Assembly (NCBI GenBank): GCA_047495785.1
Contig: JBLDXI010000029.1
Location: 3,859,986 to 3,923,985 of the forward strand
Length of the DNA stretch: 64,000 nt
Direction: 5' to 3'
DNA from: Lepidodermella squamata
Lineage: Eukaryota; Animalia; Gastrotricha
Below the pieces are notes generated by a model. It saw only the letters and a program-made list of their open reading frames with translations, made no database searches and was not told the DNA's origin. The position numbers were made by a program, and so were the translations under genes. Positions 10-34,626 of the stretch are shown here, piece after piece. Position 1 is the stretch's first letter. The number at the start of each line of letters is the position of its first letter.

Positions 10-3000
10 GACCCACCGTGCAAGTCGAAAGCTTGCGTTTGTGAGGACTGTACTAAGCGAAAAGGTTTCCCTCACTCATTTGACAGGTGTCGTCCGGGTA
101 CGTTTTTCCCACGCCCCACAGCATCGGAAAAATAACCATTTCTTTTATCTCAGTCACTTACATCAATTCCTTAGACGACTCCTGCATCCCCGATAGTCCT
201 GATGCTGTTCTAACCGTTACAGTACCCAACGCGGACTGTAATGAACAGAACAAACCCGAGTGCATCTTCGACAGGCAAGGAAATGGCTGCGACGCTGGGA
301 CACGATGCGGCAATGGAACTGATGGTTTTTGCGATGGTTACAACCGCGAGTGCATGCAAGATTGGTGCGTTTGCGTGGAGGAGAACGAGGTTTTCGACTA
401 CAACTACGGCGGTTGCGGTGCACGTCTCATCGGCGATCAGTGTAGAAAGTAGGGGGGGGGGGGGGGACGGTGGGTATCATCCTGGTCTCGGCGATGCTTC
501 ATCCCGACCTGGCAAGGGACGACAGCTCATCCCCGGGGGGATGAGGTTATATCCTGGTCTCCAGCCTAAACTGCACTGGGGACGATACTGGTAGCGGGGT
601 GAAGTTAGCGCAATCTGACGCCAAAATTTGAAATTTACGCGCAAAAGCCCTTTCAACTGTAAATCGCGAGATTGTAAAAATATAATTAAGAATATCTAAA
701 TTATATATGACATCCAGCACAATAATGGAATTATAAAAGAAGCGAGGTATAGACTTTTTACGCAAGGTGAGGTGAGGCAGACCTTAAAGCGGCAGACCTG
801 AGCCGTTCTCGTCCACTTTCATAGATATGCAAGAGTGTAGAGCAAATCTGGCGATAGATGGCGTAAATCTAAAGTCATATTCTGATTCCCAGACCCTCTT
901 TTAGTAAAGATGTTATATTTTCTTTCAGATCTAGATGATTTGCCACCTATGAGTCAATTTTTTCGATTTTTCACTTTGGACCATCTGAAAAATGTCATTC
1001 TGAAGGGTCTAGAGCAAATCTGGCGATAGATGGCGTAAATCTAAAGTCATATTCTGATTCCCAGACCCTCTTTTAGTAAAGATGTTATATTTTCTTTCAG
1101 ATCTAGATGATTTGCCACCTTTGAGTCAATTTTTTCGATTTTTCACTTTGGACCATCTGAAAAATGTCATTCTGAAGGGTCTAGAGCAAATCTGGCGATA
1201 GATGGCGTAAATCTAAAGTCATATTCTGATTCCCAGACCCTCTTTTAGTAAAGATGTTATATTTTCTTTCAGATCTAGATGATTTGCCACCTTTGAGTCA
1301 ATTTTTTCGAATTTTTTCGAAGAAGAATGACAAGGTTGACCGCCTCAAGAAGATCGTGAACTCATTGACGGACTTCACCTTTCTCGCTCAGCTGGCGTTC
1401 ATTCATGATGCCTTACGAGAGATGACCTGGTTATCCTTGACCCTTCAGAGGTCCGAATCGTCGCCCCTGGACGTTTGGCCTCATATAAGGCGAACTATTG
1501 AGCACCTCGACAACATGGGCGTGTCTGACGGTGTGAGCGTGTCAAATCTCATGAGCTCCTACGCCGAAAAACAGCTGAACGGCATTCCTCTTCGAAACTG
1601 CACTGATGCCGCCCTTGCAGCGTTTTCAGCAACAAAGTTGAAGCTATCCAGCAAGATGGCTGAAAGCCTGCGCGAACGTGTCTCGACATCGCAGAAATTT
1701 CTGGAAGCAGCTTCAGCCCTCGTCCCGCTTAACTGGCCGCCACGATCAAGTGTCAAGTTCCTCAAGTTCGGCGAGTTCGAAGTCGAAACTCTGGCAAATT
1801 CTTTTGGCCTTGATTGGTGGGCGGTGACGAAGGATCTACGCGATTGGAAAGAAGGTCGCGAACCCCTGCAATCGTCAGCGCTTGGTCAGCTCATGATAAA
1901 GTTGAAGACAGTCGCCGTCACTTCGTCTGACTGTGAGCGTGGATTTTCTGAAATGAACCGCACTCAATCAGACGATCGCAATAGGCTTTACGTTGTTACC
2001 ATGTCCTGTAAGTTTCAATTTGATGATTCGTAAATACTGGAATTAAAATCTTCGATTTATAGCTCTGATGTTCGTGTGTATTAATGGGCCTGCGATTCAC
2101 AACTTCGACCCAACTCAATTCGTGCGCTCATGGCTACAGAAGGGTCGTCGCAGTGCCCGTGATCAAGCCCGTCTTCCGGCTATAATCGACTCGCCGGTGG
2201 AGAAAATCAGGTCCACCATTTTTATACGAAAATAATTGATAGAATTAGGATGAATTCAATCTCAAAATTAGCTTTGTCTCGTCCAATGGTAGGACGCTGC
2301 CCCTAAAAGGCGGAAATCTTGGTTCGATTCCAAGGACAAAGAATGCTTTGAGAAATATAGGAAGAATGTGAATAGATGATGCGAGCGAACGCGTAGCGTT
2401 CGCGAGCGAAATTTTTTGACCAAAATACTCTATCCCCCCCTCAGGAAAATTCCTACTTTCTACGCTGTCGGCGATTCATGCTCAAAGGATTCGGAATGCG
2501 CTGTTATGCCCCAATATGGCAAGAAGAACTACTTGGTCTGCCGCAGTGGCAAATGCGCCTGCGATATCGAGGTTTCTGTTGAAACTGAGTACCGTGAATA
2601 CAATGAAGAGCGGAACAGCTTCGATGTCAAACGTGCTTGTTTGCATAAGAATGCCACGATTAACCTAAAACAGGGCGAGGAGTGTGACCTTCCCGAGAAC
2701 AGCCGGGAATGGAGATGGATGGGCGGCAAATGGCAATGGAACTGGCAAGAAGGCACGGTTCGCGTTTGCGAGAAATCACTTATTTGCCTCGCTTGCATCG
2801 AAGATGGCGACGTAGGCTTGTGCCGTGAGTTTTGAGGTTGCTTTTCTAAGTCTATTTAACCCTGGGTGGTTTATTTACTTTTTTATGTTTTTGCTGCGTT
2901 GGTTATATCGTTAGCGACGTTGAATAACTCGGATTTAGGCTTGTTTACAGCATTTTCGAAGCGACGGTTGACAAATAAAATGCGGTGTTTTTAGCGTGAA

Positions 3001-4554
3001 TGAAGAGGCAAAACAAAAGACTGTTTCCTTGTCACCTCGCACTTTGAAACGATGTAAACAAGTCTAAATCCGACTTACTCAAGGTCGCTAACGATATGGT
3101 TGTTAAATCATAAATAAATACCGGGTGAAAACAATCAAAAACCACTCTGTGAAAACTGCAGTAAACACCATGAACAGCTCTGAGTTAACAGTACCATTAA
3201 CAGGCAAGTTCAATGGACCCATTGGAATGACGGCTGAACAATGCGGGCGTAAAACATTCGTCTATTCCGGTCCGAAGTCCTCGGAGAGTGCTCCATTCAA
3301 GAGCTTTTCCAGGCAACGCCTGATCACAAGTGAGAACACAGTGATGCAATGTATAATTTCGTTAATAAAATTGTCTATTAATTAATAGATTGCACAGATG
3401 CCTCGGTGAAATGCCCACAAAATCAAAGATGCGAATCCTTCTCCACTTTTGTAAGGAAGTTCGCTTCGCGAATTACCTGCTTCTCTATTCACAACCCTAA
3501 ATAATCTAGGACCCACCGTGCACGTCGAAAGCTTGTGTTTGTAACGACTGCGCTCTGCGACCATTGGAATATGGCGATGAATGTGTTCCAAGTTTGTTTT
3601 TCTCTTTATAAAACCGTAGAATTTTTCATTTCTTCACCATGCAGCTACTTACATCAACTCCTTAAACTCTACCTGCACATCCACCCCTGGCGAGGTTGTA
3701 ACCATACCCGGCGCGGCCTGTCATTCACCATCGAACAAAACCCAGTGCCTTAATGGCACACAGGGCAATGGTTGTAATACTGTGGCAAGATGCTCATCTG
3801 ACGAAGATTGTTCTGGCAACGAACGCATTTGCAAGCAGGGATGGTGCGTTTGCAAGTTTAAGTACCAGGTTTTCGACTACAACACCGGCAGGTGCGTCGA
3901 ACGACAAATCGGCGATCCGTGTTCAAAAGACACCGACTGCACTATTGAGTACAATCTCAGCACTTTCTTGGTCTGCCGCAGTGGCAAATGCGTCTGTGAG
4001 AAGTATTCTGTTGAAACCGAGTTCCTTGAATACAATCAGGAGTGGAATAGCTTAGAGGTCAAGCGGGCTTGTATTAGTGAGGAGTCCACGTTTAACTTGG
4101 AACAGGGCGAGAAGTGCGACGTTCTGTTAAACGGCCGGAAGTGGAACTTGAAGTGGAGACCGGAGTGGGGTCTTAGCCAGTACTTGGAGCCCTATGAGGA
4201 CAGCAAGATTCGCCTTTGCAAAAAATCACTGATTTGCTTCGCTTGCATAGAAGATGGCGACGGGGGACTGTGCCGTGAGTTTTGACGTGGCTTTTCAATG
4301 TGAATTTGACTGTACCATTAATAATAGGCAAGTTCAATGGAACCATTGGAAAGTCGGCTGAACAATGCGGGCGAAAAAAATTCGTCTATTCTGGCCCGAA
4401 TCCCTTAGAAAGCGCTCCGACCAAGTCAATTTCTAGGCAACGCCACCTGACAAGTAAGCACAAAGATACCATTGCCGGAAAGAACGGCGTGACTTCGGCT
4501 GTGTCCTCCGCCACAATCCTGGCTGCTGTCTTGCTCGTCGTTTCAGCTTTGTAG
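10..4554 (+). CDS. Cys-rich EB-module-like surface protein, gene A. At least two tandem units; 5' end lies upstream of the window; interrupted by a hAT element.
   Basis: Exons inferred: 10-97, 154-437 + 2476-2824 (split by the hAT), 3204-3329, 3389-3450, 3510-3591, 3644-4274, 4328-4554. The family motifs DPPCxSKACVC, GNGC, IGDxCSxDxDC, LVCRSGKCxC and QCGRKxFVYS each occur twice. Ends in a hydrophobic tail (SATILAAVLLVVSAL). Confidence 0.8.
838..1310. repeat. 172-bp tandem repeat (~2.7 copies) inside the hAT element
   Basis: GATGTTATATTTTC recurs at 909, 1081 and 1253; the copies are near-identical. Confidence 0.95.
1311..2235 (+). pseudogene. hAT transposase C-terminal part (dimerization domain), N-terminus missing
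   Basis: ORF 1254-2033 contains VTSSDCERGFSEMN (hAT dimerization motif). After an intron (gtaagt at 2008 to tttatag at 2061) the frame continues LMFVCINGP...FDPTQFVRSWLQKGRR, typical of ZNF862/KIAA1586-like hAT transposases. Confidence 0.8.
2272..2342 (+). tRNA. tRNA-like cloverleaf (anticodon TAA, C33, short variable loop) inside the hAT element; function unproven
   Basis: Acceptor CTTTGTC/GACAAAG, D stem GTCC/GGAC, anticodon stem CTGCC/GGCGG with loop CCTAAAA, T stem CTTGG/CCAAG with loop TTCGATT. Confidence 0.65.
2905..3097. mobile_element. MITE in an intron of gene A (same family as 61847-62022)
   Basis: ~45-bp imperfect TIRs, ATATCGTTAGCGACGTTGAATAACTCGGATTTAGGCTTGTTTACA and its reverse complement ending at 3097. 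Confidence 0.8.
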
Positions 4555-6283
4555 TAGCTGAATTAATTGATCCGGCGTATTTATCTGAGGCTGACTGATA
4601 GCGACAATGCTTTCGAAATGCTGAGCTTTGAACAAATCTTATTGACATATCTCATTCACGTATTGCCGGTACTAAATGTTGAAACAGTTGTAAAATTTAA
4701 TTTTCAAGGTTGAAAGTTTCATATATTAATGAATGCTTCTGCTTATGTTGCGGCCGAGGTATGCAATCGCTCTCAACGGAGCTCTCTGAATAATTATTTA
4801 GATATAAATAAAGTCAAGTCTAACAAGGTGTTCAGAGTGTAATGAAGGTTGGCTGACGAATATCGTCATTTTATTTGTGTGAGCGATCATGTTTGCAAAT
4901 TTATACCAGGATTCTTAATTATCGAAATGCACAGATACGGCGAAAACAAACGATGTTCAGGTCATGGCGTGGAACGATGATACTGACGTTTTCGAGACGT
5001 AGTCGATTTGTTTGAATAAGGCGTATAATTTTGCATTTTGGGAACGATATCTGCTCACATCCGACAATCCGGCGCAAATTATCTCATGGTTTCTCGACTT
5101 ACGGTCCTGATTGTCGCATCAGGGTTTACAGTGATTTCCGGCTTGCCGTTATAGAAGTTGGTAATCGAAACCGGTGGATTTGATTATGTGGTCAAGAGGC
5201 CCGCGGCACTACGGTTACTCGCATGAGCAAATTCTTCAGCTCTAAATTTTGCCACAAACGGACTTTCTGAAAAATTGAGCCTTATCAATGATCCATTTAT
5301 TCATTCATTCAGTAATTCATTGCATTTTAATTAACGACAATGGAGATATTATAGCGTGATTCACATGGCTCCCTAATGATTTTAAAATCGGCTAAACATT
5401 CCGGAAAATTAAATTGTGACACATTTTTGAGTCGGAGCAGCTGCACATATATGTGCAACTGTTAGGCCATTGACATCATAATCGAATTCCATCGGGTTAA
5501 CTAGCTTCCAGCCACGATAGGTAATGATTTTTGTTAAGAAGAAATGCAGGCTGTGAGCTATGAGTGAGATGAGTCACAATCCAAAAAGAGAGGTACTAAA
5601 TTGGGGTTAGCTTTCTTTACTTGGAAAAGGACAAAACCAGGGTAAAACAACTACTCTAAAATAGAAAAGTAGGGCGTAATGCGTTTTCTCCCTCTCCACT
5701 GAAGAGTACCTAGGTGCAAAAGGTTATTTTACGCCATTCGCTTCTATTTTAGAGCGCAACACGCAATGCATATTTACCATTGCGCATACGCATGTTGTAT
5801 TATGACAGCTATGATTTTAGCACTTTTCTTTGTCTGTGTCCCAAGTACTTACAATACCGTGAGAGTAAAAATCCTACATTTGACAAGTCCTAAGAATAAA
5901 TGATAATTTCGAGGGATTACGGAATCGCAAACAATTATTAAGAAAGCGATTAATTTGTTGGGAGTAGCAAGATTCAATTTCGGTCACTCGTGTGTCGCTG
6001 CCATACTGAGTGGTAAAGGATATCAGTTATTTACTCAGAAAATAAGATTTTTTCGTTTAAGGAATTTTTTTTCGAGGTTAAGAATTTTTGAAATAGAGAC
6101 AAAAAAGGTATTTGGCCCACCTCAAATATTCGAAAAATGTCGGTAGAAAATTCCCCACCTCTGATGGCACCAGCGCTCGCCGGTCAAACTCTGACATAAT
6201 GTTTAATAAAAAATGTTGAAAGCCGCTCAGTCCAAGGTCGTGCGGAGTGAAAAAACGCCATCTTTGGCTAAAAGCGTTGTTAT

Positions 6284-6620
6284 ATATCTCATTTGTCATT
6301 TTTTTACTGCTCCGTGAATCTGTAATAATATATACGCTCGCTCACACACCGCTAGAATGCGTGTTTTTTTACTTAAGAAGGCATAAAAATAACAGAAAAT
6401 GCGCGGCCAGGCGGTGGAATGACGTGGAAAGATATTCGGGCGGGATGGTGATGCAGGTGTGAAGCGTACATAAAACAAATTACATAACCGGCGAGCATGC
6501 ACCGAGGCAGTTGAACTTTACGCGCAAGAATGTCATACCGCAGTTAAAGACTATAAAATTACACGCCGAAGATTTATTTCTTCTAGAAGTTACATTTTCT
6601 TCTTCTATTCAGCATTCAGC
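6284..6620 (+). promoter_or_regulatory. Conserved upstream/promoter block of gene B (paralogous to 10573-10939)
   Basis: High identity to the region upstream of gene C; contains GAAAGATATTCGGGC, GAGCATGCACCGAGGCA and a TATAAAA box at ~6552. Confidence 0.65.
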
Positions 6621-7861
6621 ATGCTAACAAGAATCATTTTGGTGAGACTTTTCAACAAAATTTGTGAATATTTTTCTTATTTCCTTCCTGAAAATCAGAC
6701 GTTGTGTCTTGTATCGAGCGCATTGGGGCAAAAACTTTCTACAAGTAAGCCTCGCGATGCTTTATAGAGTTGCGTTGACATCATTCTTTAATTGATAGAT
6801 TGCACAGATGCCTCGGTGAAATGCCCAGATAATCAAAGATGCGAAGCCTTCTCCACTTTTGTAAGGAATTTCGTTTTGCAGGCAGTTTGCTTTTTTATTC
6901 AAAAACTCAATTCTAGGACCCACCATGCAAGTCGAAGGCTTGCGTTTGTAACGACTGCGCTGTTCGAGGAGAATATGGCGATGATTGTGTCCCGAGTATG
7001 TTTTTCTTTCGCTAGATAGATTCGCAGAATTTCTCATTCCTTTCATCTCAGTTACCTACGTCAACGCCCTGGGCGCAGCCTGCAATACGCCTGGTGCTGT
7101 TATAACCATACCCGCCGCAGATTGTGATAAGCCAGCGAACAAAGCCCGATGCCTGCTTAGTACCCAGGGCAATGGCTGTGATGCCGGGACGAAATGCTCA
7201 TCCAACGATCAGTGTGCTGGCTACGACCGCACTTGCGAGCAGGGTTGGTGCGTTTGCAGGGAGAAGTTTCAGGTTTTCGACTACAACACCGGCAGGTGCG
7301 TCGAACGTCAAATCGGCGATTCGTGCTCGAACGACACCGACTGCGCTATCACACGCGATAAGAAGAACTACTTGGTCTGCCGTAGTGGCAAATGCGCCTG
7401 TGATACGGCCGCTGGTGTTGAAACCGAGTACCGTGAATATAATCAGCTGTGGAATACCTTCGATGTTAAGCGTGCTTGTTTGAACAAAAAGGCCACGGTT
7501 AACGTGAAACAGGGAGAACGATGTGACCCAGTTGTCAACAACATCAACTATGAAACGGCTAAGGTTTGCGAAAAATCGCTGGTCTGCTTCGCCTGCATGG
7601 AAGATAGCGGACTGTGCCGTGAGTTTCTAAGTATACTCTTTGAAATCTGAAGTTAACTCGATTTTTCCAGGCAAGTTCAACGGACCTATTGGAAAGTCGG
7701 CTGATCAATGCGGGCGACAAAAGTTTGTGTATTCGGGTCAAAAGCCGTTGGATGATGCTCCGATCAAGACTGCCTCGGGCAAGAGCGGTGCGACTGTCAT
7801 CGCATCCTCGGTCTCGGCGCCAATCCTTGCTGCTTTCTTGCTCATTGTTTCGGCTTATTAA
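6621..7861 (+). CDS. Cys-rich EB-module-like secreted/GPI-anchored protein, gene B (6 exons)
   Basis: Exons 6621-6641, 6699-6744, 6799-6860, 6917-6995, 7052-7618, 7671-7861. Signal peptide MLTRIIL/TLCLVSSALG; C-terminal tail ASGKSGATVIASSVSAPILAAFLLIVSAY. Confidence 0.9.
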
Positions 7862-10800
7862 AAACTTTATTGGTTTCCAAAGCATCAGATGTCAGAAAAA
7901 TATGACGATGCTTTCAGAATTGCAATTCCCCAGCTTTACACATTACCGACTGAAATAACTCATCTGATAAATAAAAAAGTTTTTTTTGAGTTCAACGTTA
8001 ACTGGATTAGAAGGGCGTGAAGGCCTCAACCGTTCTGCAACACCTGAGGTGCGATTTCAAACAACACGCTCAACCTTTCATTATTCTTGACTGTGATCAG
8101 GTTTTTGGGCATGCCCGCACTATACGAGCGTGATATCTGCTCATTCAGGAATACCCGGTCCGTTTTTGCTAATAGGGACAACCCGTTATAGATGTAGGTG
8201 AATCAAGGCCGGCAGATTCAATTATATGTGGTCAAGGGTCAAGGGACCCAACAGTTGCGCGTATGGGTGGATGTGAGCTACTCCAAAATTGCCAACATTC
8301 GATGGTAGTGACACCAAAAATGCGTCTCATGGTTTAATCCAACAAAAGAGCGCAGCCTACCGAAATGAGTCGGGTTAAAAGCGTTTGTTAATATTATCTA
8401 TCCATTTCACTTACGTCATATAATTAACAAAAAACATCAGTGAAGTAAAAAGACGAGAAATTAAACAAACAATTCAAGTCGAAGGGCGAAAATGAAGTGG
8501 CGAAAAATGGTAAGTTCAAGCTATGTGATTCATAGGAGCTTCTTTGTTAGCTCTTTGAGACGAATGGCTGACGAGATTTTTTACTTCGCCGCCAAAACAC
8601 GCCACAGTTTTTCCCATTTTTTAATGCGAGGACCGGGGCATTTAGTCAGGGGTCAAATCGTAGCGAATACTAGAATAGTAGAGAAGAATTCCGCAATTTT
8701 TGACAATTTCGGTTGCAAATATCCGACATAGCCGGTCGAATTTGTTGCCATTTAATCAGCGGATGTACCTGAAATTAAATGAGAATATATATCAATTACT
8801 AGCTACAAAATCAGAGATCGGGTTAATTCGATTCTTAGCTTGTAAGCTTTTCTTAATAATCCGAGAAATTTCCAAAAAATTATAATAAATTTTAGAATTA
8901 TGAATTTAAATATTTGAGGAATTTTTCCCATGAAAACGAGCGATATCAGCACATTTCGAAATTTTGAAACGATAAGACCTGGTTTTTTTCGTAAGATGTA
9001 AACTTCTGCTTTCTTCAGTTACCTAAAAGCGTGATTTTTTCCCGCGACCTCGAACGGCTAGTAGCCCATGTTTCCGTGCAGCTTCGGTACAGCGCACCGA
9101 CATGCACTAGGCGCTGTTTACGAGTTGCGTCATGCAAAGTGACAATCTCCAGTAAACATTGCTTTCCGCAGTATGACGTCTGGGACCAATAAGCTACGGC
9201 TAGTACTGAACGCTAGTACCGCTCCGGCTACCTAGGTTACAATAGTAATTATCTGAAATAATCAATATTTAAAATCAAGTAGCATATATATGGCGAGAAA
9301 GCAACACATCTACTTCTTCTTCAAGCCCCATAGGGCACATCCAATGCCAGCAAAAGTTTGTTATTTTTGCGAGTTTTCTGAGCTGCGAACTGGTGTGATG
9401 GTGGGCCAGATGAACTGCCATCGGCCCATTCATCTGGCTGTCGTTTAAGGCAGAGAGCGAAGCCCTACCATTACATCGTTACATCGGCCCATACGGTGAG
9501 GTCGGTCAAGGACCACAGGGGATTTCGCCGTCCTACTTCGCTCTTTGTTTTAATCCTTTCATGGCCGATTTTGTAACCCGCTTCTCTCTATCCATCACCG
9601 TAAAGGCTGTTCAAAAAGTGATCGAAATCGCCCTATTGGCCCAGCTGATTTCAGCACATTTTTCAAACACCCTAGTTTCAGCATCAGATGCTCTCATAAT
9701 TGAATTTTCATGTTCTAAGCCTCTCCTTCAACACTCCTTGACAATCTCCCTTTTTTATTTCGAGGAACAAATTAGTTGAAACCAGTTTTCAAAGTCAGCA
9801 TTTTTATCAGTTTTCAGCCAAGTCAGCTTTTTCACACACTATGGCGGACACGATATCATTTTTAGTTTTATCAATAAAAGATGAGAAACCACCGTAATTT
9901 CGAAATTTCAATCTCAGGTAGACTATTTTAAAACAGCTACAATGTGCTGACCATGCCAAATAACGGCGCGTTCGTTTGAAATTCTTATAGTTAACATCGA
10001 AAAGTCGTATTCCTTAAACGGGTGATGAACAATTCATCAAATTAAAATTACTGCAGATTTTCAAAGTCTAAATTCCAAAATCGCCCTTATGTATACGGCC
10101 ATGAAAGGTTGAAGACGATCACAACTTCCACGACCATTAAAATTTGCAAGAATGAGCGTTCTCTTCAAGAATTGCTATTCCGAGTAGGGAAACAAATAAT
10201 TGAAATCAAATGTGGAGGCTTAGTTTGAATTTTACGTTGCAAAAAAAATTATGAATGAATTTTAGAAGAATAATTAGGTCAGCTCAAGGCGCAGGATAGC
10301 AATTATCAAGATTTTCAAACCGAATTACTTCTCGGGAGTCGTAAAAATGAATTTCGGTCGCTGTCTTTAGGTGTTAAAGGAAATTACTCGTTTGTTTAGG
10401 AAAGATATTTTTCGTCTACAGAAGTTTTTCCAAGGTTAAGATTTTGTACAGTTTGTAAAGAAAAATTCGAAAAATTGTTTTTAAAAAATATGGTATCGGC
10501 GTTCTATGAAATAATGTTGTTTGCAAACTGTTGATAAGCCGTTACTTAATGGCAAAAAAAAACTGTGATATACATCTCATTTGTCATTTTTTACTGCTCC
10601 GTGAATCTGTAATAATATATATGTTCGCTCACACACCGTAGAATGCGTGTTTTTTACTTAAGAAGGCATAAAAAATAACAGAAAATGCGCCGGCCGGGCG
10701 GTGGAATGATGTGGAAAGATATTCGGGCGTGATGATGATACAGGTGTGAGGCGTACATACAACAACTTATATGACTGGCGAGCATGCACCGAGGCAGTTG

Positions 10801-10939: not shown

Positions 10940-12145
10940 ATGCAATCGAGCATTATTCTGGTGAGATTTTTCTGAATGATTCAAATACTTTTTAAATGTT
11001 CTACCTGAAATTTAGATACTGTCCCTTGTATCGGGAGCACTGGGACAAAAGCTGTTCTCAAGTAAGTCTTTCCCCGATGCGTAACAGAGTTTCGTTAATG
11101 TAATTTGTTAATTGATACTAGATTGCACGGATAATTCTGCGAAATGTCCACAAAATCAACGATGCGAACCCTTCACGACTTTTGTAAGCACGCTTATTAT
11201 CTATCTACTCTATTTACACATTCTCAATCCAAACTGTAGGACCCACCATGCAAGACGAAGGCTTGCGTTTGTAACGATTGCGCTCGAGGGTACATGGCCG
11301 ATGATTGTGTCCAGGGTATATTTTTCTTATTTCTCTAGAAAATCCCGCAGATTTTATCATTTCTTTCATCTCAGCAACCTACGTCAATTCCTTGAACGCA
11401 GCCTGCAATATGCCTGGCGGTATTTTAACCATACCCGGTTCGTTCTGTGATATTAAGGGGAACCAAGCTCTGTGCCTCACTAGCCCTAAGGCGAATGGTT
11501 GCGAAACTACTACACAGTGCTCATCTAACGAAGATTGTGGAGCCACCCGAAAATGCGACAATAAAGTGTGCGTTTGCTTTGAGGCTTATCAGGCTTACGA
11601 CTACAACACCGGCCTGTGCGCCGCACGGCAAATCGGTGATTCATGCTCGAATGACGCTGACTGCGCTATTACGCGTGGTAGTCCGAACTATTTGGTCTGC
11701 CGTAGTGGAAAATGCGCCTGTGATACGGCCGTTAGTAATGAAACCGAGTACCGTGAATACAACGACGACTGGAACAGCTTCGACACCAAGCGAGCTTGCT
11801 TCGGCAAGAATGCCGCGCTTAACCTGAAACAGGGTGAAAGATGCGACCAAAAACCGAGCAATGATAACTACCTAGCGCCTAAGGTTTGCGAGAAGTCACT
11901 GGTATGCTTTGCTTGCATGGAGGATAGCGGACTGTGCCGTGAGTTTTTGAAACGGAAATGTTTAATATCTGAGAATTGAATTCTTTCGATTCTTTCCAGG
12001 CAAGTTCAACGGACCCACACAGCCCACTGGTAAGTCGGCTGATCAATGCGGGCGCAAAAAGTTCGTCTATTCGGGCCAGCCTCGTTTGTCCTCCGGCTCA
12101 GCATCCGTCATAGCTGCCGTTTTGCTCATTGCTTCTGCTTTTTGA
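10940..12145 (+). CDS. Cys-rich EB-module-like protein, gene C (6 exons)
   Basis: Starts MQSSIIL|gtgag, same intron positions as gene B, main exon within ORF 11305-11979; last exon 12000-12145 ends SVIAAVLLIASAF*. Confidence 0.88.
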
Positions 12146-12659: not shown

Positions 12660-13860
12660 CTAATCAATCAATGCTTCTCTTACATATTGCATTGAACGTC
12701 CTTTGAATAATCGCTTAGCCGTAACATATGGTTCCATATCGGAACCAATTGGGACATTGGACATGCGATGACTTCGCTTTCCGAGACTAAAAAATATCAT
12801 CTTCCGCTTGGCCGCACGGGCCTGATGCACGCGGTGGGCGACACGAACTGGAATGTCAAATGTCAGCCGCCGAGTGATGTTCACGAAAAGCATATTGATT
12901 GTCCGGGAGGAGATGGTGAGGCTCCAACTACTGGGCTATTCAACGCGCGATAGCAGCGGTAGCAGAGGACGCTGCGACGACGAGAACGCGGCTTCCCCGA
13001 CTTATGCACGGCCACGGCATCTGCCTCCTTCCAATCCCGCAGTGTGTATTGGCTGCCGAGCATATGCTGTAGAGCAGACGAATGTGAATCTGTAGAGGCA
13101 CACCTCCCCACTTATAAAAGACGTTGCCGACACCGTTGAGTCCAGGGGCTCTGAAAGGCTTCAGGTTATCAATTGCGCTAGCATGCGCTGGCGGACACTG
13201 AATTCCTGCGGACCTGCGGGCTTCGACGAGAGCAGCGTTGATTGCACGGCGGTACTCGGTGAAGCGAAGGATCGGTTCGCAAGCTGAGGGAGTCGGATCG
13301 CACCGAGAAGGTACGCTGGTAGTCCTTACGATCAGCCCGGGAGAATTCGAACCGAGGGGTGGGTTCACGACTGGGCAGGACGCGCTTAACGCCAAGCAGC
13401 GGCATCTCAAAGAGTGTAGAATTTCTGAAGTGATCACTCTCCAGCCGATTGCCGATGGTAATAGATCCACTGAGCAGCTGACGGACAGCTACCACCCAGA
13501 CATCGAGTGTCGACAAGCTATTCCAGTGTGCGGATTCCAGAAATCTTTTGTACGGCACAGAGAGGAGCATTCAAATCACCCGCAAAAACACAGGGTAGTC
13601 GATAGTCGATGGAGGGCGGCATCGGGAGGGAAGCTCAGATCCAGAGAAAGAGGGCGGGCAGTAGCCGGTAACAATCCGCAGGAGAGCAGCACGAAGATCG
13701 GGGATAACATTTAGACAGATCCACTCACTGCGCTTGCGGCCAGCCATCGCCAGAAAGGCCAGCCATCGCTAGAAAGGCGGCACCCCAACAGGACACAGGA
13801 CCCATTATAAAGTAATCCACCCGGCGCCTGCTCTCTATCACACCGAAAGACTGCATAACC
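12660..13860 (-). mobile_element. Degenerate non-LTR retrotransposon (LINE) fragment; boundaries approximate
   Basis: Frameshifted minus-strand remnants: GYAVFRCDR..GG (AP-endonuclease-like), and LKPFRAPGLNGVGNVFYK and WKEADAVAVHKSGK (pre-RT motifs). Confidence 0.7.
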
Positions 13861-13898
13861 ATGAATGAATGAATGAATGAATGAATGAATGAATGAAT
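13861..13898. repeat. (ATGA)n microsatellite
   Basis: About 9.5 perfect copies. Confidence 0.95.
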
Positions 13899-13969
13899 GG
13901 CGAGAAAGGACTTTGCCGTGAGCTATTAAGGTGGACAATTTTTTGAATAAATTAATATTGACCTCGACA

Positions 13970-14142
13970 GAGAAGTCCAATGGACCTTCGGCTGATCAAT
14001 GCGGACGCCAGAAGTTTGCCTATTCGGGTCCGAAGCCGTTGGAAAGTACCCCGATATAGACCATTGACAGTAAGAACGGCGCGCCTTCAGGCATCTCCTC
14101 AGACTCAGTCCTAGCAGCGGTCTTGCTCATTGTTTCACCTTA
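13970..14142 (+). pseudogene. Relic last exon of a Cys-rich family gene (D)
   Basis: SADQCGRQKFAYSGPKPLESTPI* followed by a tail like other copies (VLAAVLLIVSP). In-frame TAG; upstream exons are absent and a LINE relic lies in their place. Confidence 0.8.
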
Positions 14143-16592: not shown

Positions 16593-17520
16593 GACAATTT
16601 TGAGAGGTTTTGGAGCGTTTCCCAGTCGAAAATCTTCACAATTTACTCGCTTCGCTCGTTTTTTGGTTGAAATGACTAGTCATTTAGGAAAATACAGGAG
16701 AACAAGGAAAAAACCAATGAATTCACGCTTATTTTCGCTAACATTAGGGAGCTCCTCGAAATTTATACCCTATGCGTATCTTTTTTCATGCTTTATTTAA
16801 AAAGGCATCAAACTCATGCAAGTTTTTTTATGCCCTATGAATTTATGGGATTTGAATTTTTTGAATTTATGAATGCGCATGTGCATATATTTAAATTAGG
16901 GAAGAAATGAAACATCAGAAATCAGGATCCCTCGGGAGGGAACCATGGTTGCCGTTTTTACAGCCGGGGATTCTAACCGCTTTACTACCAAGGCTGTGTT
17001 GCAAGATAAGGCGTATAATCATCGCCTTTCTCAATTCAAATCCTCCAAAATTTAATGTACAGGGCCAAATCTCCAAAACCGAAAATTAATGACCACCGAA
17101 CATTAGTAGATATACAGTATATAGCCCAGTTCCTTAGCTAGAATATGAGCCGTTAAACAGCGAATCAAATAAGTTTTTTCTTATCTTTCAAGTTTGCGCA
17201 TCTATGAAGATAAATTTTTTAAATCTAGGAGTCGCAACCTCCAAGCGTTAGAGTGATTTCCTATTTCCTATTCAGCAGGATTGAATATGGTTTTTCAGAT
17301 GTGTTGACTAGAAAGAAATTCGGGCATATGAAAAAACAGCGAATAAGCTATTCAAACTCCGGCATTTTTTCACCTCGTATACGTATAAAGTACGATAGTG
17401 CAAAGCCATTCATTACATCTACACTAGCGTGTATTTGTAATAATATATAGTTTCTTAAAAACATGTGAACCTGCACATACCTTATTACACAACATCATGG
17501 CTATAAATCCCGCTGGCAAA

Positions 17521-18767
17521 ATGTGCATTCGATTATACCTGGTCAGTGAACCACATATCATATTTGTAAATTCTGATTATTAATGTCAACTTTTTTCTAA
17601 AGGTCCTGTATTTTATTACTTTTAATTCATCTCTAATTGCTGCTCAGCATTTTTATAGTTCGAGTCTGTTCATTTATGTCGTGACTGAACTTACGAACTA
17701 AACTGCCTTTTTCATATCAGATTGCACGGAAGTTGGCTCAAATTGCCCCGAGAATGAATATTGCGAGTCTTTTCAAGCCATGGTAAATATTTCTATTGAG
17801 ATCTTGCCTATTGGTCTACTTATTATGGATTAGGACCCACCCTGCTCATCGAAAGCCTGTATGTGCAATGCCTGTGCGAAAAGAGGATACTTATTCGATC
17901 AATGCTTAACGAGTAAGAACTATTGCATCGAATATTCTTTGATTAATCGCTTAACCGTAACCTATAGTGTCATATCGGAACCAATTGGGAGATTCCTGTA
18001 CCGGCAGTGAGAATGAGGTTATCACAATCCCACGAGCCGAGTGCGACACGGGGAAGAAGCAAGTCTCATGTACAGTTGGCAAACAAGGCAACGGTTGTAG
18101 TTCTGGGTTTAATTGCGACAAAGGCGGGATGTGTTTAGGCTACAATTCCAAATGCGTCGCAAATCAATGCGTTTGCCAATTCGATCACGAATATTTCGAT
18201 CCAAATGAAGGCAGCTGTGTGCCGCGAAAAATCGGCGACTACTGCAATGAATTATCCGACTGCCAGAATGCAGCCTCCTTAACGCCGAATTATCTTGTGT
18301 GCTCAGCTATCAACGGAACTAAAACTTGCAATTGCGACATGGCAAAATCTGTCGAAACTCAAGTGACCACTTTCTCTGAAGATTGGAATGAGCTGGTTAC
18401 GGGGAACGTTTGCCTGCCTAATGGGTCGAGAATTAACCTGGGCAAGGGCGAATCTTGCACTATGAACTATGAGCGTTTCATTGGTTCGAACACAATCAAA
18501 GTCTGCGCGAAAAATTTGGTTTGTTTTCAATGCCCCGAAGAGGCGGATTCTGCTGAAGGCAAATGTCGTGAGTTAACGCATTACGCAATGTAAATATATT
18601 TTGAAATTTCTTTACTGACAGGCATTTTCCCTCAAAATCTGATCAAATCAGACGAAGCTTGTGGGGCGAAGAGGTTCCTATATTCGAAAGCTGATCGAAA
18701 TCGTTTCAAGTGCATCAGGACAACATCTTTGCTGTTTTTCATTTTAGTATTAGCTTTCCTTTCATAG
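17521..18767 (+). CDS. Divergent Cys-rich family member, gene F (6 exons)
   Basis: MCIRLYL|gtcagt; exons NCTEVGSNCPENEYC and DPPCSSKACMC; main exon within ORF 17967-18593; last exon 18622-18767 ends SLLFFILVLAFLS*. Confidence 0.82.
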
Positions 18768-20190
18768 ATAATCGCTACAATTTTCAAATAAAATGACTCG
18801 TTTATATTTTGGATTAAATTCAATAATCGATAACAACTTAAGCAATCAGAACTTAATTGAGAAGCAACCCAGAGATTCACTAATTTTTTAAAAGCTGAGA
18901 TCCAATTTCGGATGATAATTTAATTTGGTTATCAATTAGATCTACGATTCTTTACACCCATTTGATCTTTCATCAGACCTAAAACCTAACACCTTTTCTG
19001 TAACAATGTTGTCACTTTCATAAACGCTCGAAACTCGAATCAACCCAAGTTTCACAGCAGTGATGAGAAATCGGGATCAACTTTTTTCATATATCCTTCT
19101 CGACTTCATCCATGTTAATTTTCCGCAGCTTTGACGATGGAAACATGAGAAGAATATCGTTTTGATTTTTCAACGCAGCAACGCAGCAGCAGCGTCCAAC
19201 TTCGGCTTTTATGTCGCTATAAAATATAAAATATAAAAGATTTCATGTGAAATAATCAGGGTGCGATCTTGGATCCCGGAGCTGCCAGGGATGGAGAATA
19301 AATTGTTTGCTGTATATCTGCCAAAATTGTGAAGATTTCCACCAACCATCAAAACACGCTCCAAAATATACCTCTCAAAATATACGAAACAGAGGGATAA
19401 GCTCTCATTTTGTTGGCCGAGCTGGGTGAGATGATCCCCCCCCCCCCCCCCATTCTTCTGAAAGTCGCACGTCGCTTCCTTCTTTGTCTCAGAAATCCAT
19501 TCGATATTTAGCGATACAATTTTCCAAGTTTAATCAAATCATTTTGTAAACCTGTCTGTCAATTTGCAGCTCTAAAATTCGAAACGCCGGCTTTGGAAAA
19601 GATCAGATAAGCGACACTAAATTGGAGAGATTGAGTTATTTGCACTATTTCCATAGCTTCGATGAGTTCCAATAAATTGACCTTAAATTAATGCATCAAC
19701 GCATGCCCGCCAGCCTCCTGTGTCGAAAATTTAAGCCTGATGAGTTAACCATGCCTGGCCTACTGTCGTTCTTTGAAGGATTATATACGTAATAAACACG
19801 AACGTGAATTTGTGTAGTCTATTTGTCAAATTTTACTACTCATTGAATACGCAAAGTAAAAAAATGCATTCTATCACACCTCAACATTCGTGTTCTAGTT
19901 ATAAAACCGCATAAACTGCGGCCGTATACGCGCCATGTTGTGATGGAAAGAAATTCGGGCGTGTTGATGATACTAGTGTGAGGCGAACATCAAACAATAC
20001 CCGGTGAGCGTGCACCGAGGCAATTATACTGCATAAGAGCCAGAATGTCATAGTGATGATAATATAAATTGCCACTGTTCAACGCTATAATCAAATCTAT
20101 TTGCCGTACCTGTTACACTTTTTAAACGCCAACTGAAGATTTATTTATCATTTTCATACAGTTCCCTCTTTCATTTAAAGTATAAGCAAC

Positions 20191-21436
20191 ATGTTAACGA
20201 GCCTAATTGTGGTGAGATATTTTCAAAATTCGCTTAAATTATATATCTTAAGTTCCATTTAAAATCAGACGGTGTGTCTAGCATCGAGCGCATTCGGGCA
20301 ACGCCTGCTCACAAGTATAAACCCCAGGTGCAGAGTTTCGTTTTCAGCCTTTTAAATTAATAGATTGCACGGATGCCTCGGTGAAATGCCCTCAAAATGA
20401 ACGCTGCGAATCCTTCTCGACTTTCGTAAGAAATTTCGCTAGCCATACAACTATTTAGTTTTATTAAAAAATATTCAGGACCCACCCTGCAAGTCAAAAG
20501 CTTGTGTTTGTAACGACTGCGCCATTCGAGCTCTTTTCAAGGACAACTGTGTTCCGAGTAGGCTTTCCCTGCCAAATCAGAGAAACAGGCATTTTCTTTG
20601 TTATCCCAGCCACCTACGTCAACACTCTAAACGCGACATGCGTCGCCGATAGCCCTGGCGTTGTCGTAACCGTACCCCGCGCGTCCTGTTTTTCAGAATC
20701 GAACAAAACACAGTGCATCCTTGATAATCAGGGAAATGGTTGCGAAGCTGGGACACAATGTGGCAAGGGAACCCTGGGCTTTTGCGCTGGTTACAACCGC
20801 AAATGCGTACAGGATTGGTGCGTTTGCGTGGAGGAGAACGAAGTTTTCGACTACAACGCCGGCGGTTGTGTCGCTCGTCAAATCGGCGATTCGTGCTCGA
20901 AAGACTCGGAATGCGCTATTACGACCGATAAGAAGAACTATTTGGTCTGCCGCAGTGGCAAATGCGCCTGCGATACGGCGGCTGGTGTTGAAACCGAGTA
21001 CCGTGAATACAATGAAGATTGGAACAGCTTCGATGTGAAACGTGTTTGTATGAGCAAGAAGGCGACTGTAAATCTGAAACAGGGTGAGAAGTGTGACCCT
21101 ACCGTGAACAACTGGAACTTCGAGGCTGCGAGGGTTTGCGAAAAATCTCTGATTTGCTTCGCTTGCATGGAAGATGGCGAGAAAGGACTGTGCCGTGAGT
21201 TTTCAAGGCGGATTTTTTAATCTGAATTTTACCACGAGACTTTTCCAGGCAAGTTCAATGGACCTATTGGTAAGTCGGCTGATCAATGCGGTCGTCAGAA
21301 GTTTGTCTATTCGGGTCCGAAGCCGTTGGAAAGTGCCCCAGTCAAGACCATTGCTGGCAAGAGCGGTGCGACTTCGGCTGTCTCTTCAGCATTAATCCTA
21401 GCTGCTGCCTCGCTCATTGCTTCAGTTTCCTATTAG
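20191..21436 (+). CDS. Cys-rich EB-module-like protein, gene G (6 exons)
   Basis: MLTSLIV|gtgag, conserved intron positions; last exon 21249-21436 ends ALILAAASLIASVSY*. Confidence 0.9.
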
Positions 21437-30178: not shown

Positions 30179-31507
30179 ATGAGATCAATTCTTGTTTCCG
30201 CCGCTTTCTTAGTCGCTTCACTGCTACACGCTAATGCAGCTGTTGAGGATTGGGTAGCTGATGGAGGTGACTACAGCCATACTGGCTACAAGCCGTACTC
30301 ACTGGGTTACGTAAACAAAATCGACGTCCTTTGGAAAACGCAGCTAGAAACTACTCGCAAAGGCCTGAATGGAATTTACGTTTACAACCAGAAGTTGTAC
30401 ATTAACACTGGCGATGGAAGTTTAGCAATTCTCGACGCAAAAACTGGCAAACTGATCAAAAAGTTCAACATCTTCACGGATCTCTCAGCCTCGAGGCAGG
30501 TGATTGAGCCGCTGAACAAACTGATGTTTCTGGCAGAGGGCAACGGACTGGTTTTCGCTATTAGCCTTGAGGACGGGAAGGAGAAGCTTCTATGGTCACG
30601 AAAACTGGCTGGTGATATCTACGACATTATCCCAGTTACTGGGTTGAAAGACCTTGTTGTTGGGTTTTCAACAGACGAGAATAATGGCCAGCTTGTGGCC
30701 CTAGACTTCCAAACTGGGGAGACGAGATCTTCATATGGAGTCAATTCCATGGATATTCCCTATTACCTATCTCTCTCAAATGACAATCGACTTATCAGTT
30801 TGACGATGAGCACTACAACCGAAGCTATCGCCGAGTTTGATGCGACGAAGAATGGTAACAAATTATGGAATGTTGAATTCCCGCTAGATAACGCCGACTT
30901 AAATCATGGGCCTATGATTTCTGGCAACCTCGCAATACATAGGAAAGGGTCTGAAATGGTTTCTGTTGACATCGACACGAAATCGATGAAATGGGTCGCA
31001 TCCAGTGGCAGTCCGTATTGCGACCATTTCTTAATCGCTGTTACGGACAACGATTTCATCTACAGGAAATGTCAGTTGGGCGAACATCGCATGATGTTTA
31101 AGCATGACATTAAAACCGGTGCTTTGGAGACTTCGTACCCGGTGCCGCTTTCCGATGCGCCGCCTGCTTGCAACCCTATTGTTCTCGACGATTACGTGAT
31201 CGCACAGGGTTACTCAGGGTTCGCGATTTACGATAAGAACGACGGCAGCCTGGCTGCGAATATCACAGTTGGTGACAGCTCGTTTTCCTTTGGTTACAAA
31301 TGGGCATTTTCGGCTGGAGTGTTCTACGCGCAGGGTTCTGATGGGTATGTCTATGCGTTTGGTACGAGCTATGTGGGTACAACGCCATCTACCAAGTCGC
31401 CCCCGAAGACAACTCAACCGAATACAACCCCAAATAGCGCAGGAGTGCAGCTAATTAGTTATGTAGCATTCATTATCAATATTTCATTTTTCGTGCTTTT
31501 TCGTTGA
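30179..31507 (+). CDS. Intronless PQQ/BamB-like beta-propeller protein with signal peptide and GPI-like tail (copy 1)
   Basis: 442-aa ORF; WVADGGDYSHTGY N-terminal motif; blade repeats ILDAKTGKLI, ALDFQTGE and GSDGYVYAF; Thr/Pro spacer, then a hydrophobic C-terminus. Confidence 0.85.
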   Translation: MRSILVSAAFLVASLLHANAAVEDWVADGGDYSHTGYKPYSLGYVNKIDVLWKTQLETTRKGLNGIYVYNQKLYINTGDGSLAILDAKTGKLIKKFNIFTDLSASRQVIEPLNKLMFLAEGNGLVFAISLEDGKEKLLWSRKLAGDIYDIIPVTGLKDLVVGFSTDENNGQLVALDFQTGETRSSYGVNSMDIPYYLSLSNDNRLISLTMSTTTEAIAEFDATKNGNKLWNVEFPLDNADLNHGPMISGNLAIHRKGSEMVSVDIDTKSMKWVASSGSPYCDHFLIAVTDNDFIYRKCQLGEHRMMFKHDIKTGALETSYPVPLSDAPPACNPIVLDDYVIAQGYSGFAIYDKNDGSLAANITVGDSSFSFGYKWAFSAGVFYAQGSDGYVYAFGTSYVGTTPSTKSPPKTTQPNTTPNSAGVQLISYVAFIINISFFVLFR

Positions 31508-33300: not shown

Positions 33301-34626
33301 ATGAGATCAATTCTTGTTTCCGCCATTTTCTTAGTAGCTTCACTGCTACAGGCTAATGCATCTGTAGATGATTGGGTAGCTGATGGAGGTGATTACGCCC
33401 ACACTGGTTACAAGCCGTACTCACTGGGTAACGTCAACAAAATCGATATCCTTTGGAAATACCAACTAGAATCTACTCGCAAAAGCATGAATGGAATTCT
33501 TGTCTACAACCAGAAATTGTACGTTTACACTGACGACGGCGATTTGGCAATAATCGATGCTAAAAAAGGCGCTCTCGTCAAGCAGTTCAACGTTAAGGCA
33601 AATTGGACAGTACTCTATCAGGTGATTGAGCCCGAAAATCAACTCATGTTCCTCGCAGACTTGGATGGGCAAGTTGTCGCAATCAGCCTCGAGGCTGGAA
33701 AGGAGGCAGTCATTTGGTCTCAAAAACTACCGGGTCGTATTCACGACATAATCCCAGTTACAGGGCTGAAAGATCTAGTCATTGCTAGTACCATCGATGG
33801 TAAAAACGGTGAGTTGATCGCACTGGACTTCCAAACAGGGCTGCAGCGATCTTCTTTTGGGGTCGCTTCACTGGACATTCCTTATTACCTATCCCTCTCG
33901 AATGATAATCGATTGATCGGATTGACAATGAGCACTACAACCGAAGCTGTCGCCGAGTTTGATGCGACTAAAAGTGGGAACAAATTGTGGAATGTCGACT
34001 TCCCATTACTAAGCGCCGTCCTCAATCATGGGCCTATGATTTCTGGTAATGTCGCAATCACTAGGCAAAATTCCGAAATGGCTGCTGTTGATATCGACAG
34101 CAGAACTGTGAACTGGACAGCATCGCCTTGCAGCGACGATTTTTTGACAGCTGTTACGGACAACAAATTCGTCTACCGGAAATGTAAACCGGTCGAACAT
34201 GTCTCTATAGCCAAGCATGACATAAAAACTGGGGATTTGGTTATTATTTTCAGGGTACCACTTTCTGATGCGCCCCCTGCTTGTGACCCTATTGTTCTGG
34301 ACGATTACATTATCGCGCAGGGTTATACCGGGTTTGCGATTTACGATAAAAATGATGGCAGTTTGGCTGCCAATATCGCAGTTGGCGATGGCTCGTTTAC
34401 TTTTGGTAACAAATGGGCATTTTCGGCTGGAGTGTTCTACGCGCAGGGTTCTGATGGATATGTCTATGCGTTTGGTACGAGCTATGAGGCTACAACGCCA
34501 CCTCCAAATACGACTCCGAAGACAACTCAACCGAATACGACTCCAAATGGGGCAAACGGACAGCTGATTAGTTATGTAGCATTATTTATTAATATTTCAA
34601 TTGGCTTGCTATTCGTTGGACATTAA
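33301..34626 (+). CDS. Intronless PQQ/BamB-like beta-propeller protein (copy 2)
   Basis: 441-aa ORF, colinear paralog of 30179-31507 with shared upstream and downstream flanks. Confidence 0.85.
   Translation: MRSILVSAIFLVASLLQANASVDDWVADGGDYAHTGYKPYSLGNVNKIDILWKYQLESTRKSMNGILVYNQKLYVYTDDGDLAIIDAKKGALVKQFNVKANWTVLYQVIEPENQLMFLADLDGQVVAISLEAGKEAVIWSQKLPGRIHDIIPVTGLKDLVIASTIDGKNGELIALDFQTGLQRSSFGVASLDIPYYLSLSNDNRLIGLTMSTTTEAVAEFDATKSGNKLWNVDFPLLSAVLNHGPMISGNVAITRQNSEMAAVDIDSRTVNWTASPCSDDFLTAVTDNKFVYRKCKPVEHVSIAKHDIKTGDLVIIFRVPLSDAPPACDPIVLDDYIIAQGYTGFAIYDKNDGSLAANIAVGDGSFTFGNKWAFSAGVFYAQGSDGYVYAFGTSYEATTPPPNTTPKTTQPNTTPNGANGQLISYVALFINISIGLLFVGH

Follow-up and report, generated by a model that had tools for sequence, protein, structure and literature searches.

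How should a strong splice donor be read when it lies inside the last coding exon of a gene, in frame with a tail that follows directly behind it? The question is raised by a stretch of 64,000 nucleotides (nt) from the gastrotrich Lepidodermella squamata (GenBank assembly GCA_047495785.1, contig JBLDXI010000029.1, positions 3,859,986 to 3,923,985 of the forward strand). We call this whole stretch the window, and all positions below refer to it. In its first 22 kb, paralogous genes for small secreted proteins rich in cysteine follow one another on the same strand. The first of these, gene A, carries the motif CAA/GTAAGC in its last exon, with the GT at 4454-4455 (here and below, a slash marks the splice point). 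An earlier note on this DNA proposed that the motif is a switch: ignoring it would give a protein with a glycosylphosphatidylinositol (GPI) anchor, whereas using it would append a unit of a downstream gene, so that read-through splicing would build a combinatorial system of surface proteins of variable length. The same note left room for the donor being no more than a fossil. The evidence favours this fallback. Most probably the 4454 donor is a relic that is read through into the GPI tail, and not a switch.

The donor motif in the last exon of gene A

Gene A is already inside its first module, A1, where the window begins, and a linker exon joins it to a second module, A2. The last coding exon consists of a linker half (4328-4425), a block of 42 nt (4426-4467) and a GPI-type tail (4468-4551). 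It encodes ...APTKSISRQRHLTSKHKDTIAGKNGVTSAVSSATILAAVLLVVSAL and ends in two tandem stop codons (TAG at 4552-4554 and TAG at 4555-4557). Judged by inspection, the C-terminus ...GKNGVTSAVSSATILAAVLLVVSAL fits a GPI-type signal, with small residues, a short spacer, a hydrophobic end and no cytoplasmic tail; the C-termini of proteins B, C, E and G are by the same inspection of the same type. An exon ending at 4453 leaves one base of a split codon, that is, it ends in phase 1, and the unspliced frame past 4453 reads SKHKDTIAGKNGVTSAVSSATILAAVLLVVSAL and goes on to the tandem stops. Reading the sequence thus bears out what had been described here before: the linker SRQRHLT, a phase-1 donor at 4454 and a frame that continues into a GPI-like tail.

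The 9-mer around the splice point, CAAGTAAGC, agrees with the consensus MAG/GTRAGT at 7 of 9 positions (the median of 25 real donors of the family is 6 of 9). On the acceptor side, exon 3 begins in phase 1 in genes B (6799), C (11122), E (14928) and G (20364), as follows from a first exon of 21 nt and a second of 46 nt. For gene F the same phase is plausible (exon 3 near 17721). The earlier note had claimed it for every paralog including a gene H; the claim holds for B, C, E and G, and tblastn found no gene H in the window.

Where does the motif come from? When the last exons of genes A to C, E and G and of a fragment D are aligned with the internal linker, B, E, G and D turn out to have no 42-nt block; in gene A it stands at the exact point where the internal linker ceases to resemble a last exon. 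The block aligns with positions 3302-3345, which comprise the 3' end of the internal linker and about 14 nt of the linker intron. Both the block and the internal linker share GGCAACGCC..CACAA/GT with the end of exon 2 of genes E and G, and homology to intron 2 of the single-module genes extends over the whole intron behind the internal linker. Since its end resembles that of exon 2 and its intron resembles intron 2, the internal linker is, as judged from this homology, a chimera of the 5' half of a last exon and the last ~20 nt of exon 2, which re-uses intron 2. Two short motifs, TTTCYAGG in front and ACAMAG at the start of the intron, are common to both copies of the junction and are found in no exon 2, which points to a single origin of the two copies.

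On the same alignment, the 4454 donor is inherited within the copied block and is more than a chance motif. Since it is a copy of an exon 2 donor in the frame of a working linker, its phase match to exon 3 is automatic. The match is then not independent evidence for a switch.

The order of events can be approached in more than one way. The block is free of stop codons and in frame, and an intact GPI-type signal lies behind it. Modules A1 and A2 are only 69% identical, so that the two-module arrangement must be old. A short templated copy into the last exon may have come first, followed by an unequal exchange with the boundary of exon 2 and intron 2; this route would explain both copies of the junction with one rare event. 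The tandem duplication may instead have come first, in which case a second event must have ended at the same point. Alternatively, the block in the last exon could be a secondary copy from the internal linker. We considered whether the retained GT.AG of the copy is a sign of selection and rejected this, as chance retention is likely at a divergence of ~30% between the copies; the neutral chance that GT.AG was kept since the copying is roughly that of a coin toss.

The motif and its phase can also be compared with other GTs of the family. Among the GTs inside exons, 8 of 330 score at least 7 of 9. Two of these eight lie in the last exons of further genes, CTG/GTAAGT at 12030 in gene C and TTG/GTAAGT at 21270 in gene G; both are in phase 1 and come from Gly-Lys codons (GGT AAG). 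Going by their sequence, they can be taken as natural controls for chance donors in last exons. Since these motifs are of equal strength and in the same phase, motif and phase are not specific to gene A.

A hypothetical join 4453>6799 is in frame. It would give ...SRQRHLT-N-CTDASVKCPDNQ..., and it mirrors the native junction between A1 and A2, ...SRQRLIT-N-CTDASVKCPQNQ.... The first real acceptor that a read-through transcript meets downstream of 4454 is that of gene B exon 2, at 6699. A join 4453>6699 shifts the frame and runs into a stop after 26 codons. Because this acceptor is met first and is out of frame, an in-frame product needs exon 2 of gene B to be skipped; note that this exon lies merely 54 nt from exon 3. 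The would-be intron from 4453 to 6799 is 2,345 nt long and encloses a complete promoter as well as exons 1 and 2 of gene B. The promoter belongs to a block of ~250 nt that is found before B, C, E and G and has a mean column identity of 73% in their alignment.

Transcripts, gene damage and the competing explanations

Two public sequencing runs, X1 and X2, are the only ones that contain sequence of the window. X1 is a single small run from 2015 (118 million letters) that was available as assembled contigs only. It behaves as complementary DNA (cDNA), since GT..AG introns are skipped, a template-switch adaptor stands on the C-type 5' end and the depth is zero at 5054-6541. X2 is probably a DNA run of the source sample.

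All five introns of gene B are covered in X1 (6641>6699, 6744>6799, 6860>6917, 6995>7052 and 7618>7671), and a contig of 738 nt matches gene B at >99% identity and stops at 7981, shortly past the AATAAA of this gene at 7969. Two other joints, 3450>3510 and 3591>3645, are the two introns of module A2. The switch predicts junctions from 4453 to 6799 or to later exon-3 acceptors; neither these nor any other splice joint from 4453 are among the 15 best-supported joints listed for X1. Similarly, X1 has no intergenic transcript, with a depth of 0 in every bin of 5054-6541; rare RNA can escape such contigs. Exon 3 of gene B is joined to its own exon 2 (6744>6799).

One joint of X1 is listed as 3326>6799 and would at first sight connect gene A to gene B. 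We rejected it as such a splice: the contig differs from 3258-3326 in 7 of 69 letters, a further 48 letters of it have no fit, and the 21 letters past the joint are identical at 3389 and at 6799 (the two exons share their first 29 nt). By its sequence the contig stems from another two-module gene, a paralog, and spans the junction behind the internal linker of that gene. X1 contigs that map to 4493-4588 were likewise rejected as the tail of gene A. Their variants match a second DNA contig in X2 (depth ~94 on top of 85), and, since this extra contig has full depth, they come from a paralog. The tail of gene A is not clearly expressed in X1, where no contig has its own variants (places 4504-4557). 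Finally, the X2 joints 2706>4199 and 7752>3386 were considered as alleles with one module fewer or more; cross-mapping of paralogs, at the threshold of 90%, explains them equally well.

As a separate observation, positions 2905-2949, which belong to the intron that leads from the large exon of A1 to the internal linker, have a depth of ~36,000 in X2, compared with ~100-200 elsewhere. This depth and the many different flanks indicate that the segment is part of a repeat with a very high copy number.

Gene A is damaged in the assembly. A DNA transposon is inserted in module A1. Its target duplication of 8 bp (TCGGCGAT at 430-437 and 2468-2475) is perfect, and its inverted ends of 16 bp (CAGTGTAGAAAGTAGG) match at 15 of 16 positions; just inside both ends lie homopolymer runs of G or C. 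The target duplication and the inverted ends that begin with CAG are the reason for the label hAT-like. The transposon contains three tandem repeats of 172 nt (831-1346) and an open reading frame (ORF) of 259 amino acids, for which a Pfam search gave no match. The reading frame of A1 stops seven codons into the transposon, and gene A in the assembled haplotype is therefore probably a null allele, unless the transposon is spliced out.

The 3' end of gene A differs from that of its paralogs. An AATAAA had been placed near 4807 and is indeed present at 4807-4812. It is contained in a segment of 149 nt (4791-4939) that is replaced by 10 letters in an X2 contig of about half depth (49.5; joint 4790>4940), so the AATAAA of gene A is polymorphic.

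What, then, does the donor do? On the switch hypothesis, a transcript of gene A would run on past the poly(A) site, and the 4454 donor would be joined to exon 3 of B, or of a paralog further along, with exons 1 and 2 of that gene left out, which would give a three-module GPI-anchored protein and a regulated combinatorial repertoire. Several observations speak for such a use and thus against a relic. The 9-mer at 4454 recurs without change as the exon 2 donor of gene B at 6745, where RNA shows it in use, and the join 4453>6799 stays in frame and reproduces the native internal junction ...SRQR(H)LT-N-CTDASVKCP. The linker junction of the paralog in X1 is a positive control, since it demonstrates that such a donor is spliced when an acceptor follows. 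The paralogs have a canonical polyadenylation (poly(A)) signal 107-152 nt past the stop; the homologous signal is lost in gene A, which has no canonical AATAAA until 251 nt past its stop, and this loss could favour transcriptional read-through. The cat APOBEC3 protein A3CH arises by the same design (PMC2397500). The RNA evidence of X1 is also thin, as contigs drop rare isoforms, five joints and 70 loose ends lie beyond the 15 best-supported joints, and gene A itself may perhaps not be expressed in the sample. Against the switch stand the RNA results, namely the lack of a 4453 joint among those 15, the lack of an RNA contig over 5054-6541 and the splicing of B exon 3 to its own exon 2. The architecture of the locus argues in the same direction: an intron of 2,345 nt, with a promoter and two exons inside it, has to be set against introns of mostly 53-60 nt in the family, the exon 2 acceptor is first in line and out of frame, the downstream genes keep conserved promoters of their own, and module A1 is broken by the transposon in the assembly. 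The anatomy has thus withstood the analysis: a phase-1 donor, a GPI-type tail and a frame that fits exon 3 of the following gene. Read-through splicing, and with it the combinatorial system, is unsupported. We regard such a switch as unlikely. There is a small but appreciable chance for a weaker form, in which the donor would be used at a low level or conditionally (e.g. in a stage other than the sampled one), splicing A to exon 3 of B or later paralogs to give longer anchored multi-module proteins, as an invertebrate parallel to feline A3CH, or in which the 42-nt block would repeatedly offer homology for unequal exchange with the exon 2 boundaries of neighbouring genes, so that the number of modules would expand and contract.

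The donor might also act within the last exon itself, either by splicing to a cryptic acceptor, TTTCAG/C at 4546, or by binding a U1 small nuclear ribonucleoprotein (U1) that damps or shifts the processing of the 3' end. This acceptor-like site is rich in pyrimidines and at a workable distance; an intron of 93 nt would remove the GPI signal, and the short open frame after the join would leave a soluble form ending in ...HLTTL. From the donor it is 98 nt to the stop and ~350 nt to the first AATAAA, and inhibition of polyadenylation by U1 is established in vertebrates and their viruses. Still, the joint 4453>4547 is absent from the same 15 joints, the TTTCAG stems from ordinary Val-Ser-Ala codons and is not conserved in B, C or E, and U1 control of poly(A) sites is not known from the source animal, which makes an action of this kind very improbable. 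A further explanation is that gene A is a dead allele or pseudogene, whose donor and tail have no current function and look intact because the damage is recent. The transposon of 2,030 bp with its perfect target duplication and its stop within seven codons, the loss of the homologous poly(A) signal and the lack of X1 contigs with the variants of the gene A tail all agree with this. Module A2 and the last exon, however, keep open frames and good splice sites, and the insertion may be polymorphic or spliced out. We consider a dead allele quite improbable as the explanation of the donor; note that it is compatible with a relic.

In the relic reading that we prefer, the chimeric linker exon joins the two modules of gene A and keeps the donor of exon 2 and intron 2. 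A copy of this junction, 42 nt with the exon end and about 14 nt of intron, lies in frame in the true last exon, directly before the GPI signal. Lacking an acceptor to pair with ahead of the poly(A) site, the donor of the last exon would be translated as Ser-Lys-His-Lys-Asp, and the read-through product would keep its lipid-anchor tail. We infer both the constitutive read-through of the donor and the mode of origin of the block from the homologies and frames described above.

The gene family and its surroundings

Complete open frames were rebuilt for genes B, C, E and G, with six exons apiece (Table 1). The introns of the family are mostly 53-60 nt long, and the genome is of the short-intron type among animals. 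A hydrophobic leader, e.g. MLTRIILTLCLVSSALG, stands at the N-terminus of proteins B, C, E and G; the first exons of gene A lie upstream of the window. The family of the array probably consists of secreted, cysteine-rich, EB-module-like proteins with a GPI anchor. Its relation to the EB module (Pfam PF01683) is borderline, with 24.5 bits for module A2 compared with a gathering cutoff of 24.3, and 21.9 bits, which is below the cutoff, for the module of B. Three distant relatives, P0001, P0002 and P0004, score 34-54 bits to the same module. An exhaustive HMMER search of 1.8 billion representative proteins gave only 9 matches, the best with 38% identity and all from metagenome assemblies of the European Nucleotide Archive (ENA), and a scan of metagenomes of the Joint Genome Institute (JGI) with a five-module profile confirmed nothing. 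These searches thus yielded no orthologous locus with which the donor could be compared.

Table 1. Coordinates and properties of gene A, the neighbouring gene B and the single-module genes in the window.
Feature	Positions	Strand	Details
Transposon, hAT-like	438..2467		2,030 bp, inside the large exon of module A1
Internal linker exon (A1 to A2), chimeric	3204..3329	+	donor GT at 3330; intron of 59 nt to A2 exon 3 at 3389
Module A2	3389..4274	+	exon 3 3389-3450, exon 4 3510-3591, large exon 3645-4274
Last coding exon of gene A	4328..4554	+	from spliced translation and alignment; acceptor aataatag/GC
In-frame block of 42 nt	4426..4467	+	encodes SISRQRHLTSKHKD; from last-exon alignment; 68% identical to 3302-3345
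Donor-like GTAAGC	4454..4459	+	CAA/GTAAGC, GT at 4454-4455; 9-mer CAAGTAAGC
First canonical AATAAA past the stop of gene A	4807..4812	+	251 nt downstream
Promoter region of gene B	6380..6620	+	conserved upstream of B, C, E and G; TATAAAA at 6552-6558
Gene B exon 2	6699..6744	+	first real acceptor downstream of 4454; starts in phase 0; end of signal peptide
Gene B exon 3, proposed acceptor	6799..6860	+	phase 1; from joint 6744>6799 and in-frame check
Exons 1 and 2 of single-module genes (B, C, E, G)			exon 1 21 nt; exon 2 46 nt, end of signal peptide
Exons 3 to 5 of single-module genes (B, C, E, G)			exon 3 62 nt; exon 4 76-79 nt; large exon 5 564-585 nt
Last exon of single-module genes (B, C, E, G)			KFNGPIGKSADQCGR...AP.K, then several small residues in a row and a hydrophobic end

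Modules A1 and A2 alone have an expanded loop rich in tryptophan before the last cysteines of the large exon (2700-2745 and 4140-4200, e.g. REWRWMGGKWQWNWQ); the single-module genes have a short loop at this place. Gene F (17499-18770) is a divergent paralog with the shared exon plan and a hydrophobic C-terminus. The intron before its large exon has a short element at ~17940-17990, which occurs a second time at 12716-12760. Fragment D (13900-14142) is a truncated pseudogene that retains only the end of the large exon and the last exon, with an in-frame TAG and a deletion of 9 nt. Upstream of it we see a run of (ATGA)n at ~13860-13900 and a GC-rich part (12700-13800) that resembles part of a mobile element. 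At the 5' end of gene C (10867), RNA contigs have a SMART-type template-switch adaptor directly before AGTCTTGCTTT. Transcription of this gene starts ~30 nt past a TATAAAA, and there is no spliced leader on its mRNA.

Further downstream in the window, two intronless ORFs of 441-442 amino acids (30179-31507 and 33301-34626) lie inside a tandem duplication of 3.1 kb. Both match PQQ_2, a BamB-type beta-propeller (E 6e-16 and 9e-14), which is a bacterial-type family and unusual in an animal genome.

Known systems and the meaning of a probable relic

Transcription-induced chimerism has been described for 2-5% of human genes (as summarised in PMC2397500). A closely comparable system is known from cats, where the double-domain APOBEC3 protein A3CH results from read-through transcription, with a splice donor that shares sequence with the stop codon of the paralog upstream (Munk et al. 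2008, PMC2397500). Both the chimeric mRNA and an active protein were demonstrated (PMC2397500). The feline locus resembles that of gene A in its tandem one-domain paralogs and in the position of the donor, which lies in the last coding exon of the upstream gene, and it embodies the mechanism that was proposed here: use of the donor removes the C-terminus and adds the domain of the downstream gene. Unlike A3CH, no chimeric RNA is seen for gene A, the in-frame acceptor belongs to the third exon and not to the first, and a promoter lies in the spacer.

Typical conjoined genes of mammals are spliced from the donor of the penultimate exon to the acceptor of exon 2. They share with the proposed switch between A and B that the genes are neighbours on the same strand, that the poly(A) site is read through and that the intergenic stretch is removed as an intron. 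In genes A and B, on the other hand, a join to the exon 2 acceptor would shift the frame, and the contigs of X1 contain no read-through RNA. A choice of 3' splicing that decides on a GPI signal is also known from within single genes. The H and T forms of acetylcholinesterase and NCAM-120 use alternative 3' exons, with support from both RNA and protein; for gene A there is no evidence of an alternative form.

Tandem duplication and unequal exchange, which lead to gene fusion and to the duplication of modules, leave chimeric exons behind. The linker of gene A is such a fusion scar, composed of the 5' half of a last exon and the 3' end of exon 2, and the 4454 motif is a second copy of the scar. 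It differs from usual fusion scars in that the copy includes ~14 nt of intron, is in frame and stands exactly at the original point of fusion. This placement, as read from the alignment, hints at a short templated copy, from which the duplication may have started.

If the donor were used, one array of single-module genes would yield proteins of variable length, a compact way to diversify the cell surface and comparable to the APOBEC3 genes of cats. What is seen fits better with an ordinary scar left by the evolution of the gene. Even a strong donor in the right phase, when it stands in a last exon, does not show that it is used, and similar motifs in the other two-module copies of this genome should be read as relics unless junction reads appear. 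As such a scar, the locus is a clean and datable example of how a two-module gene is formed from neighbouring paralogs, with intron 2 re-used as the intron between the modules.

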